Positions 5,246 to 51,653 of a DNA stretch of 64,000 bases are shown here, in pieces. Position numbers and translations under genes: made by a program. Position 1 is the stretch's first letter. Every line of letters begins with the position of its first letter. The stretch spans positions 124,001-188,000 of IMG/VR virus record IMGVR_UViG_3300025141_000020; one strand, 5' to 3'. The notes beneath the pieces were generated by a model, which saw only the letters and a program-made list of their open reading frames with translations, was not told where the DNA came from and did not search any database.

Positions 5246-5633
5246 TATAAAGTGTACATTGGATGTCTTCGAGGATTATAGGGGTTGTTTATTGCCTATA
5301 GAATTTACTGGACTAGGTTTTGAACCTAAGAGAGTTTTTGTGGTCAATAGTGTTCCTGTTGGTGACATTCGTGGAAATCACTCACACCATAAAACTAAAC
5401 AGTATATAATTTGTACTAATGGGTCGGTTAATGTTATGTTAGATGACGGTAAAACTAAAAAAACAACAAAACTAAATAGAAACCAGTCTATTATGGTTCC
5501 AGAGTTAGTGTGGGATTCTCAAGAATTTTTAACGGAAGACGCTGAAATATTAGTTATATGTTCAACAGAATACAACATAGAAGATTATATACTAACCTAT
5601 GATGAATTTATTAAAGTGATTAACCAAAGATGA
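5235..5633 (+). CDS. FdtA/QdtA-like NDP-4-keto-6-deoxyhexose 3,4-ketoisomerase (cupin)
   Basis: DYRGCLLPIE, PKRVF, RGNHSHHKTKQ cupin His motif, YILTYDEF. GTG start. Confidence 0.85.
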   Translation: MKNNIKCTLDVFEDYRGCLLPIEFTGLGFEPKRVFVVNSVPVGDIRGNHSHHKTKQYIICTNGSVNVMLDDGKTKKTTKLNRNQSIMVPELVWDSQEFLTEDAEILVICSTEYNIEDYILTYDEFIKVINQR

Positions 5634-20308: not shown

Positions 20309-20766
20309 AAAATATAAAAATAACTGAAAATGAATTAATCTCTCTTATAGAGAAAGTGGTTAATGAAAATCTAGGCTCAACACCATCATTAAGTGCTCAT
20401 GGAGGTGGTTTTGCAAATTTAGGAATGGCAAAACCAACTGATAAGTATAAAGACCTATATGAAGATGATGATATAGAAACTGAAGTAGATGAAGACTACG
20501 ACCAAGACCCTGAAGCTGAAAAATCAGCTGATATTACAGTAACAACACAACCTGGTTCAGATGATGAGGATGCGTGGATGGAAAGTATTGTTGATAGATT
20601 AAAAAGTAAACTAACCGAGGGTAAATGTCCTAAAAGTGGGTGTGTAACTAAACGTGGTAATAAATGGAGAGTCATTAGTAATAAAACTGGAAAACTGTGG
20701 GATGCTGAATATGATAGTAAAGCTGATGCGGAGTCGGGTTTAGAGGCTTATCACGCAAATCAATAA
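20305..20766 (+). CDS. Acidic putative capsid-internal protein with a small basic C-terminal module
   Basis: Leader MKNIKITENELISLIEKVVNE; acidic linker; LTE followed by GKCPKSGCVTKRGNKWRVISNKTGK... Confidence 0.55.
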   Translation: MKNIKITENELISLIEKVVNENLGSTPSLSAHGGGFANLGMAKPTDKYKDLYEDDDIETEVDEDYDQDPEAEKSADITVTTQPGSDDEDAWMESIVDRLKSKLTEGKCPKSGCVTKRGNKWRVISNKTGKLWDAEYDSKADAESGLEAYHANQ

Positions 20767-20809
20767 TAGAAAATATATATAATAAATAAAACCTAAAAAA
20801 TTAAAAATT

Positions 20810-20875
20810 ATGAAATGTGATTGTCAAATATGTAAGTGTGGTACGACATGTGACTGTACTTGTTGCGACTGTTAA
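20810..20875 (+). CDS. 21-aa Cys-rich metallothionein-like peptide MKCDCQICKCGTTCDCTCCDC
   Basis: Translated by hand: ATG 20810, TAA 20873-75, 9 Cys of 21 aa. A-rich leader like neighbouring genes; terminator follows. Below the ORF-track length cutoff. Confidence 0.75.
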   Translation: MKCDCQICKCGTTCDCTCCDC

Positions 20876-20903
20876 ATAACAGTTAATTAAAAAATAAAGA
20901 TAT

Positions 20904-20932
20904 AAAAAAACCACTTATTAGGTGGTTTTTTT
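20904..20932. terminator. Bidirectional rho-independent terminator
   Basis: AAAAAAACCAC-TTATTAG-GTGGTTTTTTT between convergent genes. Confidence 0.8.
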
Positions 20933-20936
20933 GTTT

Positions 20937-23400: not shown

Positions 23401-25197
23401 CTATCTAAGTTCTCTAACATCAAACGTTCTAACTCCGTCAACAGTGATTCTTCCGTAGAATCTATTGTTCACCATTTTCTTAGCGTATCTAGTCATGATA
23501 CCTTTGATTGGTGTAAAGTTGAATGGGTTATACATTGTAGGAGTTAACTGTAATGGTACATACGGTGCGTAAACGTACCCAGTATCCAATAAAGATGTTC
23601 CTTTATGTCCAATTAACACTTGGTTAGCTGGGAAGTAAGGGTCTCTATATACAGTAAATCTTCCTGATAATGTTCCAATTTTCTCAATACCCATATTGTA
23701 TTGGTCTTGGTCCGCTGCTGCGTTAGAAACGTGGAAGTATTCCAAGTCATCAAATATCGCAGAAACTTCAGAAGAACATACAATCCAGTTAGCCCCACCT
23801 CTTAAAGTAGACTTGTGGATTTGAGCTGAAATTTGGTTAACCGCTGTGATTAATGTTTGGTTCCAGTCTTTTTGAGTATATGGAGCTTGACCAGCTGAGA
23901 ATCTCTTCCAACCGTTGTAGTCCCATCTTAAATCCCAAGCTGCACCTTTTCTAAGGTCTCTTAAGATTTCTCTATCAATCTCTGCAGCAACTTCTTCAGA
24001 TAATAAAGCTGTTAATTCAGCTTCAGCATCTATGTTGTGGAATGCAGAAACGTCTTGTGCAAGTTCTGGTGACCATTGAGCTCTTAATTTTCTTTCACTT
24101 ACAGAAACTGTAACACCTTGAAGGTCGAAAGAAACTTCTCCCATATCTTCTTCAAATTCTAATGTAGCGTATTGTCTCCATTCTGCATTGAACTCAAAGT
24201 TTGCACCAGTTCCAGTCATACCAACATAACCATCAACTGAAGTACAACTAATACAAGCTGGACAAGAAGTATCAACCTCTAAATAGATATCTCCATTTGC
24301 GTCACACGTATCAGCTCTATCTACAATACCAAAACCGTATTTCTGTGTAACAACACGGAATAGGATTGGTGTTTGTGTTCCATACCCTAACGTTGAAGCT
24401 GCAATCTGATTACTTGTAGTTGCCGTAACAGAGTCACAACAAGATAAAATGTTAGCTGTAGTTAATTGTAATGAAGATAAGAAATCTTCTGTATCTTGCT
24501 CATTTCCATCAGGCCCAGTTAAAGTACCAACACCTGTTTGTGAGAAACCAGATAACTTAACAATAACACCTCTAGTACAAACTGTTACATCTCTTTGACC
24601 ATCACTTAATGCTGGTGGAACTGCTCCATTCCAGATAACCTCTACAGTACCTGCCGTTACGTTAGTGTATTTACCTCTAGAATAATCATAAGTACCATTA
24701 TCCATTTCTTGTGGTGAATTACCTGCATAGTAAGCGTCATATAGATTTCCTGTCGCTGCTGATACTGGATTAGCGTTGTTTGGATTTCCTGTTGACCCCA
24801 TTGGTGCTCCGTGAGTACCTGTACCAGGAGGTCCTACCTCTGTTCCTGCTACTACAGTTCTAGGTGTAATTTTAGGTACGAAGTAGAACAATTTACCAAT
24901 TGGTAAGTTCATAGCTTGTACAGAAACGATATCGTTAGCTAACAATTTCGAGAATACTCTTCTAATGATTGGAAATACAACCGTTTCGAAGGACCCTGAA
25001 TCACCAGCCGTCGTTGCTTCGTTTATTAAATTTGTTGCTTGGTTTTCATATAACTGTGCAACATTTTCTTTGACATGCCCTTTAAGTCCATCTAAGAACC
25101 CAAGACCATCCCATTTTTTTAAGGTATCTTCCTTGATAACTTTAAGGTGTTTTAAACCTATGTTACCAACCATACCTGATTCTAATAGTGCTCCCAT
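23401..25197 (-). CDS. gp23: Major capsid protein, T4 gp23-like, with an enlarged Cys-rich insertion
   Basis: VSVQAMNLPIGKLFY, RKLRAQWSPELAQDV, HNIDAEAEL, EIDREI, YAPYVPL, GIMTRY. Confidence 0.97.
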   Translation of the reverse strand: MGALLESGMVGNIGLKHLKVIKEDTLKKWDGLGFLDGLKGHVKENVAQLYENQATNLINEATTAGDSGSFETVVFPIIRRVFSKLLANDIVSVQAMNLPIGKLFYFVPKITPRTVVAGTEVGPPGTGTHGAPMGSTGNPNNANPVSAATGNLYDAYYAGNSPQEMDNGTYDYSRGKYTNVTAGTVEVIWNGAVPPALSDGQRDVTVCTRGVIVKLSGFSQTGVGTLTGPDGNEQDTEDFLSSLQLTTANILSCCDSVTATTSNQIAASTLGYGTQTPILFRVVTQKYGFGIVDRADTCDANGDIYLEVDTSCPACISCTSVDGYVGMTGTGANFEFNAEWRQYATLEFEEDMGEVSFDLQGVTVSVSERKLRAQWSPELAQDVSAFHNIDAEAELTALLSEEVAAEIDREILRDLRKGAAWDLRWDYNGWKRFSAGQAPYTQKDWNQTLITAVNQISAQIHKSTLRGGANWIVCSSEVSAIFDDLEYFHVSNAAADQDQYNMGIEKIGTLSGRFTVYRDPYFPANQVLIGHKGTSLLDTGYVYAPYVPLQLTPTMYNPFNFTPIKGIMTRYAKKMVNNRFYGRITVDGVRTFDVRELR

Positions 25198-35239: not shown

Positions 35240-36930
35240 TACTTTATACTACCTTCTCTCGTAATAAATATATTTTTGTTATCTGACAATATAGCTATAT
35301 CACCCCTTTTAGTTACCCCTTTAAGTTTAGAATATTTATTTTCGTTTAAATATTTTTTAACACCTAACTCTTGTTCAACAGTTTTAGATAACTTTTTTAT
35401 AGTTTCGTTAGTTTGGTTTTTTCCAATTTTTTCTTTTATGTACTGTTGTGGTGTTTGTTTTGTAACATAAGATTCTAATAGCTTTGATACTCTATTTTTT
35501 AAGGATTTCATCGCTACACCTTCTTTTACAGCTGCTTTTCCTCCGTCTTTTGCTTTATATGTCTTTATAATATGTTTAAGAGCTTTTAAGATAACCCCAC
35601 CTGGGAACACTAACGCAGCTGCTTCAATCATTTTAATTTGTGCGGCAGTGAATTTTTGTATTGCTTTTTCATCTTTAGCTTTTTTTATTAGTTTAGCTAA
35701 CTCTGGTTTTACAAATGGTAACATTGGTAGTACTGGGGCCAGCAGAAATTGTTCTTTAAGAGGTAGTTTTGTACCTTTCGTAAGAGTTTTCCCTACGAAT
35801 CTGAGTGCTTTTTTACCTTTTTTAGATTTTAATGAGTCAACTGCTTTTAATATTGCTGTAATCCCGACAAATATAGGTCCTGATGGAAATGCGGCTAGAC
35901 CTGCCGTTAGTAGGGCTATCTCTGTCTTAGTTAGTGTGGATGCATCTTTCTCACCTTTAGCAATTGCGTCTTTGAGTTTCTTACTAATAAATTCTAACAT
36001 CTTCTTAGCCATCTTATGTTGTTCTGACATAATATTTTTACGTCTTCTCCTTGATTCTGGTAACATTACGTCCATATCAAATTCTTCACCTTCACCTTCA
36101 TCCTCAAGACCTTCCATGTCTTCAGTATCATCTATTGCTAACTCATCGTCATCTATAGCTAATTCTTCATCACCTAGTTCTTCATCACCGTATGCAGTTT
36201 CGTCTTCTTCGAATCTTGATAATATATCTTCTCTGTCTTCGTCATCTAACACATCTAAATCTACAGCGGATATAACTGAATTTATAACATACTTTATATC
36301 TGCACTTCCTATCTCTTCTCCAGCGTCTCTAAGTTTTTGACCTAATTTACCGGTAAGTTTTTGAATTGGTTTCATAAACCCTTCCATTTCTTCTTCCTCC
36401 TCACCTTCTTCATCATCCATCGCTAACTCTTCATCATCCATCGCTAACTCTTCATCATCCATCGCTAACTCTTCATCATCACCTAAATCAAAATCCTCTT
36501 CACCACCAATTTCGTCAGTTGTAACATCTACTTCAGCTTCAGGTGTTTTTAAAACAAATTTGTTTTCTTCACTAGCTTGTTCAAATATTGGGTCTGATTC
36601 ACCATTATTAAATTCTTCATTTATTGGTTTAAAAATTAAATTCATTCTTTTTAATGCTGAACTATAACTTCTAAATCTATTTCTTTTTTTGTTGTGTAGT
36701 CCATCAAGATAATCTAACTCCGATTCATTAATCCCTCTTTTTAGGTAGTATCCATCTTTTTCTTGAATAATAGCGTACGTGTTTCCATCACTAGCTTTTT
36801 TACTAAACGATAACGTTTTAGTGTGGTAAGAATCATTTTTCTTTGTCTCACCATAGGTCGCGATTTCCATAATTCTCTTAATCTTATCTTGACCTGTTAA
36901 TTTTTCACTTCCGATTGGTTTTAATCCCAT
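35239..36930 (-). CDS. Acidic putative capsid-internal/core polyprotein
   Basis: Leader KIKRIMEIATYGE; DDEELAM repeats; two hydrophobic FP-x-G modules. Confidence 0.55.
   Translation of the reverse strand: MGLKPIGSEKLTGQDKIKRIMEIATYGETKKNDSYHTKTLSFSKKASDGNTYAIIQEKDGYYLKRGINESELDYLDGLHNKKRNRFRSYSSALKRMNLIFKPINEEFNNGESDPIFEQASEENKFVLKTPEAEVDVTTDEIGGEEDFDLGDDEELAMDDEELAMDDEELAMDDEEGEEEEEMEGFMKPIQKLTGKLGQKLRDAGEEIGSADIKYVINSVISAVDLDVLDDEDREDILSRFEEDETAYGDEELGDEELAIDDDELAIDDTEDMEGLEDEGEGEEFDMDVMLPESRRRRKNIMSEQHKMAKKMLEFISKKLKDAIAKGEKDASTLTKTEIALLTAGLAAFPSGPIFVGITAILKAVDSLKSKKGKKALRFVGKTLTKGTKLPLKEQFLLAPVLPMLPFVKPELAKLIKKAKDEKAIQKFTAAQIKMIEAAALVFPGGVILKALKHIIKTYKAKDGGKAAVKEGVAMKSLKNRVSKLLESYVTKQTPQQYIKEKIGKNQTNETIKKLSKTVEQELGVKKYLNENKYSKLKGVTKRGDIAILSDNKNIFITREGSIK
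36408..36480. repeat. 21-bp tandem repeat x3.5 (encodes DDEELAM)
   Basis: CTTCATCATCCATCGCTAACT at 36408, 36429, 36450 plus a partial copy. Confidence 0.95.
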
Positions 36931-47558: not shown

Positions 47559-47967
47559 GGGGGTGACTGGAATTGATTGGCGTCAGTCGATTAATGTCAG
47601 CACGTCGAGCCTGAATTAAGCTCGTAAAATCTGATTCATTTTTTTAACTGGCAAAACAATTGCTAAGTTGGCGACTTTAGGACTTGTCCGTGAGGGGTCA
47701 ACAGTGGCTATCGCGTAACTAAGTTACGATATAGCTCCGTTTTCGTTAAAGTCTCTTAAGATTTGTAACTTTATATATGAAAACGTCATTTAGACAAATC
47801 GACCCCACCCTCTACTGTTTGGGTGGTAAAATATAAGATGGTCTAGGTTACTTTGAGGGTTGTTTATTCTGTAAAAGTAACTGAATAGTTAGAATAAACT
47901 AAACGTGTAGGATAGATGTTAGTAGAAGATGAACAAGACGGGGGTTCGATACCCCCCACCTCCACCA
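47559..47967 (+). ncRNA. ssrA: tmRNA (SsrA); tag ORF 47650-47718 encodes GKTIAKLATLGLVREGSTVAIA*
   Basis: 5' GGGGGTG pairs with 3' CACCTCC-A-CCA with G3.U70 wobble; T-arm GGGGG-TTCGATA-CCCCC; PK1-like CGAGC/GCTCG; TAACT-GGC resume context; stop inside hairpin CGTAAC-TAA-GTTACG. Confidence 0.95.
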
Positions 47968-49280: not shown

Positions 49281-51653
49281 TTATTTGGTGTTTAGTACAT
49301 TTATTAGACCTTCATATATGTTTGGGCTTGGGTTCCTTCCTTTTTCTTCTTTTTTATCTTCTTTTTTATCTTCTTCATTCCATTCGTTTATTTGGTCTCT
49401 AACAGCACCAAACCCTCCCTCCTGAAACGCTTTCGTAAGGTCTTTTATTATATTTGAGAATTCTAGCTGAATGTCTTTGATTGCTGCACCACTTCTCTTA
49501 CCTACATCCTCATGGTCAGGGTCTGTCGTAAAATAAACTTCGGGACATTTACCCCCTGTTTTATTACAACATTGTCCTTTGTTAAAGTCTTCAGAAGTTA
49601 GTCCGTTTAAAAACTCTTGGAAGTCGTTGGACCACTTATTAGTAGCGTCTCCTTCTGGTTTATAATCATTACACATTGCTAACCTAGATAGATTATCTGT
49701 ACTAATTAGAGCTTCTGGTTTGTAACGACCATATACTGTTTGACCACGTTCATTTTCTCTTGTTTCTGCGTATTCTGGCCAGAAGTCTGTCAACATTTTT
49801 GCTGCTTTATCCAGAGAATCATCGTCCGAGTCCGAACCAACTACCCACGACTTCTCCCCAATCCAATCCAACGCGTCACCTTTATCTGTTGTTACCAGAT
49901 TTATCAGCAAACCTATTAGTGGGATTTTCTTATTCATTAACCCTAAATCATCTATAAATTTAGTTTTTCCAATTTTATTATAAAAGAAAACTATTTGTGA
50001 CATTGCTAAAACTGTTGGTGCGGCATCTATAACCGCTTCAATACTCCAGTCATCCACACCAGTTATCCATTTAAGGAATGTGTTTGATTCAAATACCCAA
50101 GTATCACTATATCTTGCCATCTCACCTATAAGTTCCTTTCTAAAAGCTTCTCTATCTTTGTTTGGTATTCCAGCTATTGTTTTTTTGCCCGCGTCATCTT
50201 CTATCGCATATTTGTTAATTAATTCTGTCATGTCATCAGATTCATCAAAATCTCTAACAACCATATAACCTCTAAGGTAGACATGTAATTTGTCAGCTAG
50301 TGCTTCTGCTTCAGAGTCTGATAGTCCACCCAGTTGATAAATAGCGTCTTTATTCCCTTGGAATTTTTTATATAGTTGTTCGGTTGCACCAGCTATTGAT
50401 TTATTACTAGCTGTCAAGGTCATGAGTGATTGGATAAGTTGGTCTATAAGGACAGCTCCAGTTATCCCTAGTGCTGTATACATGAGCCCTTTTTTTGTTT
50501 TTGGGATAATTTTAAGTAAGGTACCTCCAACAGTAAATTTGTCTTTTAACATGTTTCTCAACATTGATATGAGGTCAGTGGTTGCGTTCTTTTCTCCACC
50601 TAACAGAGTTCTAAGTGCGGCATCGTCTAGTGTACCATTTTTAGCTGCTCTACGTGTTGCTGCATCAGAGTTTTTCCATATTAATTTAATAATGTTATCT
50701 TGTTGGTCGGACCTTGATAGTATCCCTATCAAATCATCAAGAACTTCAGGTGGTATCACTCTGTCTTTTTCAATTGCCCTACCTATAAGAGCTACTAGTT
50801 CATCTACCGACCTTGGTAACGTGTGAGTGGACTGACTTGCTAATTCCGTTAATTCTTTTTGTAATGATTTAAGGTTAGTAACTCCATTTGTTGGGTCATC
50901 TATCCAAGCCTTAAATACTTTTTGTTTAGTTCCACTAGCACCTGCTGATTTTGTTTTCCATATAAAGGCTTTCAAATCCTTAGTAAAAGTCTCTAACCAT
51001 GTGGTTGATTTAAGTGTAGTCAAGTCAACTGCTTCTTTTTCTGCCTTTTCAATTGCTTCTCTTTCTGCTTTCTCAATTGCTTCTCTTTCTGCTTTCTCAA
51101 TTGCTTCTCTTTCTGCTTTCTCAATTGCTTCTCTTTCTGCTTTCTCAATTGCTTCTTTTTCTAACTTTTCCGCAATTTCTTTTTGTACTTTTGCTTCCAA
51201 AAGTTTCATTTGTTTGCTGAATGAGGTAGCAAATCCATCTCCATTTTTTAAAAAATATGGCATCCAGGCTAAAAAATCATCTAACTGCTTTCCACTAAGA
51301 GACCCATCTGCCACCTTAGTCATTACCTTTTTTATAGTTGCCATGTCATAGAGTTCTCCGTTTCTACCAACTAAAGCTATAATAGTTTCTCCATCAGCAG
51401 CAAATTTAACATTAGCTTTTCTTGTCATTCTATCGAATACGTTAGCTACTGCTTGTGAACCTTCCTTTCCTACAAGTTTTATCATCCTGTCTGCTAATGC
51501 TTGTGAGATTTCTTTTCCTCCTTTTTTAGTGAATAGTTTTTGGAAAAATTTAACTATATCATCTCTTTGTTCTGTTATTAGGTTATTAGTAGGTTGTTTT
51601 AAGCCCATTATTTCGCGGGCTCTTTCTAATTCGTATATAATTTTTTTATTCAT
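49281..51653 (-). CDS. Large putative capsid-internal (ejection-type) protein with leader, EKAEREAI repeats and a hydrophobic segment
   Basis: Start MNKKIIYELERAREIMGL...LITEQ; central TM-like GLMYTALGITGAVLI. Confidence 0.55.
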   Translation of the reverse strand: MNKKIIYELERAREIMGLKQPTNNLITEQRDDIVKFFQKLFTKKGGKEISQALADRMIKLVGKEGSQAVANVFDRMTRKANVKFAADGETIIALVGRNGELYDMATIKKVMTKVADGSLSGKQLDDFLAWMPYFLKNGDGFATSFSKQMKLLEAKVQKEIAEKLEKEAIEKAEREAIEKAEREAIEKAEREAIEKAEREAIEKAEKEAVDLTTLKSTTWLETFTKDLKAFIWKTKSAGASGTKQKVFKAWIDDPTNGVTNLKSLQKELTELASQSTHTLPRSVDELVALIGRAIEKDRVIPPEVLDDLIGILSRSDQQDNIIKLIWKNSDAATRRAAKNGTLDDAALRTLLGGEKNATTDLISMLRNMLKDKFTVGGTLLKIIPKTKKGLMYTALGITGAVLIDQLIQSLMTLTASNKSIAGATEQLYKKFQGNKDAIYQLGGLSDSEAEALADKLHVYLRGYMVVRDFDESDDMTELINKYAIEDDAGKKTIAGIPNKDREAFRKELIGEMARYSDTWVFESNTFLKWITGVDDWSIEAVIDAAPTVLAMSQIVFFYNKIGKTKFIDDLGLMNKKIPLIGLLINLVTTDKGDALDWIGEKSWVVGSDSDDDSLDKAAKMLTDFWPEYAETRENERGQTVYGRYKPEALISTDNLSRLAMCNDYKPEGDATNKWSNDFQEFLNGLTSEDFNKGQCCNKTGGKCPEVYFTTDPDHEDVGKRSGAAIKDIQLEFSNIIKDLTKAFQEGGFGAVRDQINEWNEEDKKEDKKEEKGRNPSPNIYEGLINVLNTK
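51050..51145. repeat. 24-bp tandem repeat x4 exact, with degenerate flanks (encodes EKAEREAI)
   Basis: CAATTGCTTCTCTTTCTGCTTTCT at 51050, 51074, 51098, 51122. Confidence 0.97.

Follow-up and report, generated by a model that had tools for sequence, protein, structure and literature searches.

The stretch of DNA analysed here comprises 64,000 nucleotides (nt), positions 124,001 to 188,000 of the IMG/VR virus record IMGVR_UViG_3300025141_000020, a contig of 210.6 kb with a G+C content of about 31-32%, and it is referred to below as the window. On the plus strand, at positions 20810-20875, the window carries an open reading frame (ORF) of 21 codons and a TAA stop which, judging from the comparison of its many homologues, is a genuine translated gene of a previously unannotated family, and we regard it as nearly certain that this mini-gene is real. 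That the encoded peptide binds metal and has a metallothionein-like function is the reading which we favour, by inference and with moderate confidence.

The ORF begins with ATG and its translation, MKCDCQICKCGTTCDCTCCDC, contains 9 cysteines among 21 residues (43%), arranged in CxC, CxxC and CC motifs, and no aromatic residue, so that the position, sequence and motifs given in a preliminary description of this DNA, made from the letters alone, were confirmed exactly. It is housed in an AT-rich spacer of 170 nt between two convergent genes, and no larger ORF overlaps it. Nine cysteines is the maximum found in the window for any stop-free stretch of 21 codons, and in 100 first-order Markov simulations of the 64-kb window the corresponding maximum was four (15 runs), five (63 runs) or six (22 runs).

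Identification of the mini-gene family

The family was collected by means of a DNA pattern. The first pattern consisted only of nine TGY codons in the spacing of the window ORF, and its matches in IMG/VR were mostly polycysteine or TGY repeats; it was therefore tightened so that six spacer codons had to begin with V and the last cysteine codon had to be followed by TRR. The tightened pattern was found in at least 120 viral contigs of IMG/VR, where every listed match is a family member, and in 33 genome contigs when one genome per prokaryotic species was scanned, 32 of which come from marine Bacteroidota. According to our own arithmetic, the chance of the strict pattern at this base composition is about 1e-16 per position, and the matches are thus taken as homologues. 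The pooled unique loci amount to at least 110 viral and 31 cellular ones (141 among the matches listed), corresponding to 124 distinct peptides and 134 distinct coding sequences; the family statistics below likewise refer to the matches listed.

The results showed that the family has several properties of a translated gene. An in-frame ATG, which the pattern does not demand, was located zero to three codons 5' of the first cysteine in 122 of 123 matches, and the triplet after the ninth cysteine was TAA in 101 and TAG in 6 of 107 unique loci, the sense codon TGG, which TRR also allows, being used in none of them. The peptides are 20-23 residues long (about 2.2 kDa), the nine cysteines have the same spacing in all 124 distinct peptides, and between them stand hydrophilic residues (N, D, K, E, Q, T, S and G), with no F, W or Y at core positions, one histidine among the 124 peptides, and one tyrosine at residue 2 of a single cellular peptide, ahead of the first cysteine. 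Every cysteine codon varies between TGT and TGC, and at the non-cysteine codons the ratio of nonsynonymous to synonymous polymorphism (pN/pS) is about 0.5 and the entropy at codon positions 1, 2 and 3 is 1.08, 0.94 and 1.40 bits, respectively, the third position being the most variable. Differences in length are confined to whole codons before the first cysteine, and the DNA is 70-90% identical across the family with the peptide pattern held constant. The preliminary description had named a lack of conservation of the frame and the cysteine pattern in related phages as a refutation of its proposal, and the outcome speaks strongly for a real gene: more than 100 viral contigs preserve the frame, the start, the stop and the nine cysteines amid frequent synonymous and spacer changes, and so do loci that were retrieved through neighbouring genes without use of the peptide.

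The surroundings of the mini-ORF are also those of a gene. In 113 viral contexts the mini-ORF is co-oriented with both neighbours 76 times, the gaps to the neighbours are often 1-14 nt, or there are overlaps of 4-11 nt, and a larger overlapping ORF was seen once. Upstream of the start, the frequency of A across the family is 0.91 at position -3, 0.75 at -6 and 0.74-0.88 from -11 to -14 (0.87-0.88 at -13 and -12), and G stays at or below 0.1 throughout -17 to -1, with no enrichment. Adenines at -3, -6, -12 and -13 were found by experiment to favour initiation in Flavobacterium johnsoniae, and the phylum Bacteroidetes does not use Shine-Dalgarno pairing for initiation (PMC6847099); the family profile agrees with this experimentally defined signal, and the A-rich initiation region previously remarked on for the window ORF has the same four adenines. 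No promoter-like TTTG or TAnnTTTG element was read by eye in 20785-20809, so that the mini-gene, the last cistron of a long plus-strand operon in the window, is probably co-transcribed with the upstream gene for a protein of 153 amino acids (aa).

The statement that the gene had gone unannotated was upheld in every collection consulted. The mini-gene is not among the gene calls on the carrier contigs; the window peptide matched no Pfam family and no NCBIfam model; 71 family members gave only PF01439 in Pfam, in 10 members and at E values of 0.33 or higher; a profile search of the PDB with the family gave no match at E <= 10; and eight family members looked up exactly in a collection of 15 billion protein sequences were all absent. 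When deposited phage genomes were searched at the DNA level with the 2.1-kb region and with 100-118-nt pieces for two mini-ORFs, only chance AT-rich fragments were obtained (E of about 0.1 or more), and tblastn with the peptide against the same genomes returned nothing, probably through low-complexity masking. The relatives that tblastn yielded with two neighbour proteins were all distant, namely one uncultured phage and dehydrogenases of Campylobacter phages that are about 25% identical, and thus no cultured relative is available. A literature search turned up neither an account of a family of this kind nor a metallothionein described from a phage; a soil study is credited in one review with metallothioneins carried by phages, but the word is absent from the full text of that study.

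Retrieval through neighbouring genes and cassette behaviour

To avoid the circularity of a search by cysteine pattern, three retrievals were made via neighbouring genes only. The convergent membrane protein of the window as bait gave 55 loci, 10 of them with the mini-ORF, and a dehydrogenase often encoded 3' of the mini-ORF gave 80 loci, 17 of them with it. Three homologues (64-70% identical) of a 119-aa protein encoded next to cellular copies gave seven contigs, all seven with the mini-ORF, which was absent beside a more distant homologue of the 119-aa protein in another context. All 34 copies retrieved in this way have an intact start, an intact stop and the full set of nine cysteines, and none of the three retrievals showed a decayed copy.

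The first relative, locus L002, was found via the upstream protein (43% identical), and the mini-ORF there encodes MCDCEICKCGTKCDCTCCDC; it and the window ORF differ by the in-frame deletion of a single codon, two synonymous substitutions and the replacement of two spacer residues. A comparison of window positions 20785-20907 with L002 positions 5453-5569 gave 89% identity for the ORF and 100% for the 32 nt from its stop to the terminator stem (20876-20907), whereas the genes on either side reach only 57-64%. This conservation of the cassette suggests exchange, perhaps recent, among related phages, strong constraint, or both. In loci L281 and L284 the same upstream gene is followed directly by the same bidirectional terminator, with the mini-ORF absent. 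Among relatives there is thus either an intact copy or a clean absence, which makes the gene an optional accessory cassette of about 100 nt. These loci also correct the earlier assignment of a terminator to the mini-gene itself: the hairpin is real, and it is not the mini-gene's own, since it persists where the mini-ORF is absent.

The mini-gene is a phage accessory gene (moron) shared with the presumed host clade, in that it has both a presence/absence polymorphism and homologues in genomes of that clade. Like phage morons and auxiliary genes, it is a small optional cassette found in a minority of syntenic phages, with homologues in the presumed host clade, and it is inserted at operon ends or beside lysis genes; unlike them, it is far smaller than the auxiliary genes that are usually annotated, and it is invisible to gene callers.

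Cellular copies and probable hosts

The mini-gene had been described as a phage gene, and the cellular matches showed that it is not peculiar to phages. The cellular carriers are metagenome-assembled genomes (MAGs) and single-cell genomes of marine Bacteroidota, with contigs of up to 1.1 Mb, assigned to Flavobacteriaceae, Cryomorphaceae MED-G11, Candidatus Marisimplicoccus and Marinoscillum/Cytophagales, and uncultured marine Flavobacteriales carry copies in conserved chromosomal synteny. Most cellular copies stand in one conserved order, namely glutamine synthetase, Na/Ca exchanger, tRNA gene, 119-aa helical protein and mini-ORF; the mini-ORF starts 24-31 nt after the 119-aa gene and is followed by a lipoprotein-like gene and pirin. 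The 119-aa neighbour has a confident all-helical AlphaFold model (predicted local distance difference test score, pLDDT, of 87.5), it has no match in Pfam or NCBIfam, and Foldseek searches of the PDB and of the AlphaFold database (AFDB) clusters gave nothing better than E = 0.39. The tRNA gene (Rfam, 54 bits; L235:5531-5603) is present at the equivalent place in 13 cellular loci, directly 5' of the pair formed by the 119-aa gene and the mini-gene. The cellular mini-gene is followed by a Bacteroidetes-type TAnnTTTG motif and by about 300 nt of conserved sequence with a hairpin at its end, which could be a further unannotated transcript.

The cellular peptides typically have the form MDCNCxxCNC(T/N/D/Q)(K/N)SC..., and among the matches listed, glycine is found at core position 9 in 78 of 96 distinct phage peptides versus none of 28 distinct cellular ones, the N-terminus being mostly MK in phages and MD in cells. 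The phage copies form a subtype of their own and do not look like recent captures from hosts. A Flavobacteriaceae MAG contig with a copy of the phage type (L252) is itself phage-like, with genes for a helicase and a deoxycytidine monophosphate (dCMP) deaminase. The start regions of the window's own genes lack Shine-Dalgarno sequences, and this, together with the low G+C content and the restriction of cellular copies to marine Bacteroidota, points to uncultured marine Flavobacteriales as the probable hosts of the 210-kb phage and of many other uncultured phages.

The metallothionein-like reading

The criteria of composition for metallothioneins (Kagi; Binz and Kagi) are a mass below about 10 kDa, cysteine-rich motifs, and few aromatic residues and histidines. 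The family has each of these features in its sequence, with peptides of about 2.2 kDa, constant cysteines in CxC, CxxC and CC motifs, hydrophilic spacers, and scarce aromatics and histidine. From this composition, together with the Zn3Cys9 cluster of the mammalian metallothionein beta-domain (PMC10243857), we infer metal-thiolate folding, a cytoplasmic site and metal buffering. The peptide has no signal or leader sequence and would thus stay in the reducing cytoplasm; too short and too cysteine-dense for a hydrophobic core, it would be expected to need metal ions in order to fold, forming a Cys9 metal-thiolate cluster with them. The likely load would be about three Zn(II) or Cd(II) ions, or four to six Cu(I) ions, as in metallothionein beta-domains and fungal copper thioneins. 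In this form the peptide could buffer, sequester or donate soft metals, and the cassette, a moron or auxiliary gene in the phages, would add to the capacity of the infected cell to buffer metals.

Among known systems, the nearest resemblance is to the fungal copper thioneins, which could be convergent. Like the copper metallothioneins of fungi, the mini-peptides are very short, with cysteines as the only ligands, spacers of N, S, G, D, K and T, and no aromatics. In the comparison with the sequences in Table 1 of PMC4755600, the cysteine spacing of residues 11-24 of Candida glabrata MT2 (family 10), CxCxxCxCxxxCxC, is identical to that of the mini-gene family, and hhalign aligned six cysteines of that protein without gaps. 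The family profile also aligns with Neurospora crassa MT (family 8; 26 aa, 7 Cys) over 7 of 7 cysteines with one 3-residue gap, the segment CNCGSGCSC of that protein corresponding to the family consensus CNCGTSCDC. The differences are that the mini-peptides have 20-23 aa versus 26 and 9 cysteines versus 7 in the N. crassa protein, that they end in CCxC-stop, and that they occur in bacteria and phages and not in fungi.

The vertebrate metallothionein beta-domain shares with the mini-peptides the dominance of CxC motifs and the number of nine cysteines, the count of the three-metal cluster (PMC10243857), and the match in number noted in the preliminary description agrees with that Zn3Cys9 cluster. 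The mini-peptides differ from the vertebrate beta-domain in having no sequence match to it in the Pfam and PDB searches. The nine cysteines of the beta-domain are spread over about 30 residues, in a spacing different from that of the mini-peptide, and the domain is fused to an alpha-domain. The BmtA/SmtA type of bacterial metallothionein (PF02069) likewise comprises cytoplasmic metal-thiolate proteins, and SmtA also opens with a CxCxxCxC motif; SmtA has about 55 aa, a zinc-finger-like fold, and His as well as Cys ligands, whereas the window peptide has no PF02069 match, no His, and with 21 aa less than half the length.

Several points weigh against the metallothionein-like reading. The composition stood up across 124 peptides, but none of the metallothionein families of Pfam, the NCBIfam models or the PDB chains was matched significantly; the hhalign probability was 48% for both fungal metallothioneins, and as the score is driven by cysteine content, it does not demonstrate homology. 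Most matches came from a pattern that demanded nine cysteines, and variants with other spacings lie outside the sample. Genes for metal regulation, transport or resistance are not among the conserved neighbours in either cells or phages, and the conserved cellular partner, the all-helical 119-aa protein, has no informative fold match.

Alternative explanations

The strongest alternative, which we consider rather unlikely, is that the gene is translated and its thiols serve something other than metal buffering, such as a redox or electrophile sink, an iron-sulphur (Fe-S) carrier, or an inhibitor of a host protein in takeover or counter-defence. The data do not single out any metal, the patchy accessory distribution among related phages is also typical of host-takeover genes, and a flavin adenine dinucleotide/nicotinamide adenine dinucleotide (FAD/NAD) dehydrogenase as the next gene in 26 of the 113 viral contexts among the matches listed is a possible hint of thiol redox chemistry. 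The dehydrogenase and the element upstream of it, however, lack the peptide in 63 of 80 loci and so are not obligate partners, the conserved housekeeping synteny of the cellular copies argues against a weapon used purely by phage against host, and an odd number of cysteines in constant CxC/CC spacing, separated by hydrophilic residues and never by aromatic ones, is the signature by which metallothioneins are classically known.

That the peptide is the precursor of a modified or secreted cysteine-rich product, i.e., a ribosomally synthesised and post-translationally modified peptide (RiPP) or a disulphide-knotted toxin or bacteriocin, appears very improbable. It is small and cysteine-rich like many RiPP cores and disulphide-rich toxins, and in some phages it is encoded directly 3' of a holin gene, so that release at lysis is conceivable, but there is no leader or signal, the first cysteine being residue 2-5 (zero to three residues after Met), and no conserved modifying enzyme, protease or exporter is encoded nearby, the neighbours varying over at least six contexts. 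In addition, the cysteine count is odd, and the neighbours in cells are housekeeping genes.

Still less credible is a cysteine-codon-rich leader peptide, functionless as such, whose translation would sense Cys-tRNA and control the downstream terminator or gene. The likeness to amino-acid-sensing leader peptides lies in a short ORF dense in one type of codon and sometimes followed by a terminator: there are nine cysteine codons among 21, a terminator-like hairpin follows in the window and in 41 of 106 viral loci among the matches listed, and in the dehydrogenase group a hairpin is located about 50 nt past the stop, with a co-oriented gene after it. Attenuators, however, have a conserved regulated gene downstream, and none is seen here: in the window there is no co-oriented next gene, the terminator being bidirectional and the next gene convergent; in 17 loci the next gene follows 9-11 nt past the stop with no terminator; and the downstream genes are unrelated to one another and to cysteine metabolism. 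The terminator also exists without the mini-ORF, since in the dehydrogenase group the hairpin, the terminator and the gene are unchanged in the 63 of 80 loci which lack it. A leader, moreover, would need only the cysteine codons, and not the constant residue spacing, a stop right after the ninth cysteine, or selected hydrophilic spacers.

The last alternative, that there is no gene and the stretch is an ORF by chance, or an element conserved as DNA or RNA which merely happens to be open, could draw on its length of only 66 nt, its absence from the output of every gene caller and the high conservation of the flanking non-coding 22 and 32 nt in L002, and it is effectively refuted by the comparative data, as nine cysteines exceed the maximum of all 100 of 100 simulations, start, stop and spacing are kept though neither a start nor a true stop was required, the third codon position varies most, length changes by whole codons before the first cysteine, and the peptide pattern is constant over DNA of 70-90% identity.

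Gene contexts and other features of the window

The viral carriers are diverse, with at least six distinct gene contexts, which are given in Table 1 together with the features of the window.

Table 1. Positions of the mini-gene and its neighbouring features in the window, and gene contexts of the mini-gene in viral contigs
Feature	Position	Strand	Description or basis
Mini-gene	20810-20875	+	Signature M-x(0-3)-CxCxxCxCxxxCxCxCCxC-stop; ORF and family comparison
Translation initiation region	20785-20809	+	A-rich, no Shine-Dalgarno, A at -3/-6/-12/-13; Bacteroidetes type
3' spacer of cassette	20876-20901	+	Comparison with L002
Bidirectional intrinsic terminator	20902-20934	both	Terminator-like hairpin scored on both strands
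Upstream gene, 153 aa	20305-20766	+	Last large gene of long plus-strand operon
Convergent gene, 101 aa	20937-21242	-	Conserved; hydrophobic, apparently membrane-spanning stretches
Major head protein gene	23401-25197		phrog_138 match; 2.5 kb from mini-gene
Context: 3' of holin gene			TAATG stop/start overlap
Context: 5' of FAD/NAD dehydrogenase			
Context: 5' of 163-aa CxxC...CxxC protein			9-11 nt upstream; clamp-loader-like gene nearby
Context: 5' of dCMP deaminase			
Context: 3' of 87-aa protein			Stop and start overlapping
Context: window type			Operon end, convergent gene

The terminator is common to two convergent transcription units, and the product of the 101-aa convergent gene is apparently a membrane protein. 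Homologues of the 153-aa upstream gene precede the mini-gene in 11 loci, and the protein itself has no Pfam or PHROG assignment. Apart from the major head protein, which we take to resemble T4 gp23, the five nearest large ORFs of the window received no function from PHROGs. The position of this head protein gene makes the proposed late region plausible; the suggested tie to cysteine-rich virion proteins proved not to be specific, as holin, dCMP deaminase or replication genes adjoin the mini-gene in other phages.

The C-terminal part of the 153-aa protein, about 50 aa (window 20610-20766), is a module of the form C..GC..KRGNKWRV...GKLWDAEYD...AE.GL..Y which recurs elsewhere in large phage contigs at 63-70% identity, either as a stand-alone protein of 73 aa or as part of a protein of 440 aa (L003:4995-5216 and L004:4638-5960), with no mini-gene nearby.

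The FAD/NAD dehydrogenase, which is like a pyridine-nucleotide-disulphide oxidoreductase, was considered as a functional partner of the mini-gene and rejected, since either can be present where the other is absent. The 437-aa dehydrogenase gene is preceded by a conserved element of about 110 nt (L350:2385-2490, and equivalently placed in L322-L401). This element is made up of a hairpin, an A-rich linker and a terminator-like hairpin with a T-run, and includes the motif CGTATATTAAC; the 4-bp stem core of the hairpin exists in eight fully complementary versions, with 26-27 of 27 sequences paired at each position, and its loop, ATTCATAGC, is conserved. The element occurs with or without the mini-gene and matched no Rfam family. 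A second, different family of cysteine-containing mini-ORFs, 29-35 aa long, was found in the slot of the mini-gene, after the preceding gene and before the conserved element (L353:2265-2373, L371:1972-2080, L372:2268-2376 and L384:199-295); its members have the form MK.FIC...CFGWC... and a cysteine-rich C-terminus, e.g., ...KCDCNCNC.

In two phage groups a likely zinc protein is encoded right after the mini-ORF, namely the 163-aa CxxC...CxxC protein, 9-11 nt downstream in 17 loci including L015, L028 and L131, and the dCMP deaminase (phrog_174) at L252:5361-5864 and in L174. Such neighbours fit a role as metal donor, and the pattern is anecdotal.

Two further ORFs depart from the usual form. 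A variant of 36 residues and 13 cysteines, MRNRQNCNCENCKCQKACNCMKCNCSKSCDCACCDC, is encoded on the minus strand at L133:795-905, in which the N-terminal CxCxxCxC module is duplicated. A cysteine-rich ORF of 33 residues in an archaeal MAG, MEKKKTKSEKVCSCCECEPCICKPECKCCCCEC (L248:3133-3231, minus strand), also fits the pattern; as read from the translations, it has a NifS-like cysteine desulfurase on one side and, on the other, a redox-disulphide protein with a NifU-like protein after it, and an ArsR-type regulator is located near it. This peptide may be unrelated to the family and tied to Fe-S assembly.

Elsewhere in the window there is a transfer-messenger RNA (tmRNA) gene at 47559-47967 on the plus strand, with a full-length match to the Rfam model RF00023 (123 bits versus a gathering score of 47) and the tag peptide AKLATLGLVREGSTVAIA* according to ARAGORN. 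Two near-perfect tandem repeats are located at 51025-51162 (24 nt, 5.8 copies, 95% matches) and 36407-36480 (21 nt, 3.5 copies, 100% matches); since the period is divisible by three in each case, the repeats are probably in frame within genes. Two other stretches of the window with six or more cysteines were rejected as off-frame noise, one of them arising from the repeat at 51025-51162.

Implications

A gene of 66 nt conserved in at least 110 viral and 31 cellular loci implies that real, selected genes are missed in the annotation of marine phages and MAGs; if the reading given here is true, the uncultured Flavobacteriales of the ocean and more than 100 phage lineages share a gene that every annotation pipeline has missed. 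Fungal peptides of 26 residues and 7 cysteines were once considered the shortest metallothioneins (PMC4755600), and 20-23 residues with 9 cysteines would undercut them. If the peptide binds metal, it would be a minimal natural metal-thiolate scaffold and, as far as the literature search extends, the first metallothionein-type gene evidenced in Bacteroidota and as a recurrent phage accessory gene. We propose, tentatively, that the family could be the shortest metallothionein family known, the first for Bacteroidota and the first that is widespread in phages, and that infection could alter how the hosts hold copper, zinc and cadmium. Phage infection would in that case directly change the holding of Cu, Zn or Cd in abundant marine heterotrophs, which offers a testable link between viral infection and the handling of trace metals, such as Cu toxicity and Zn/Cd scarcity, in the heterotrophs of the ocean.

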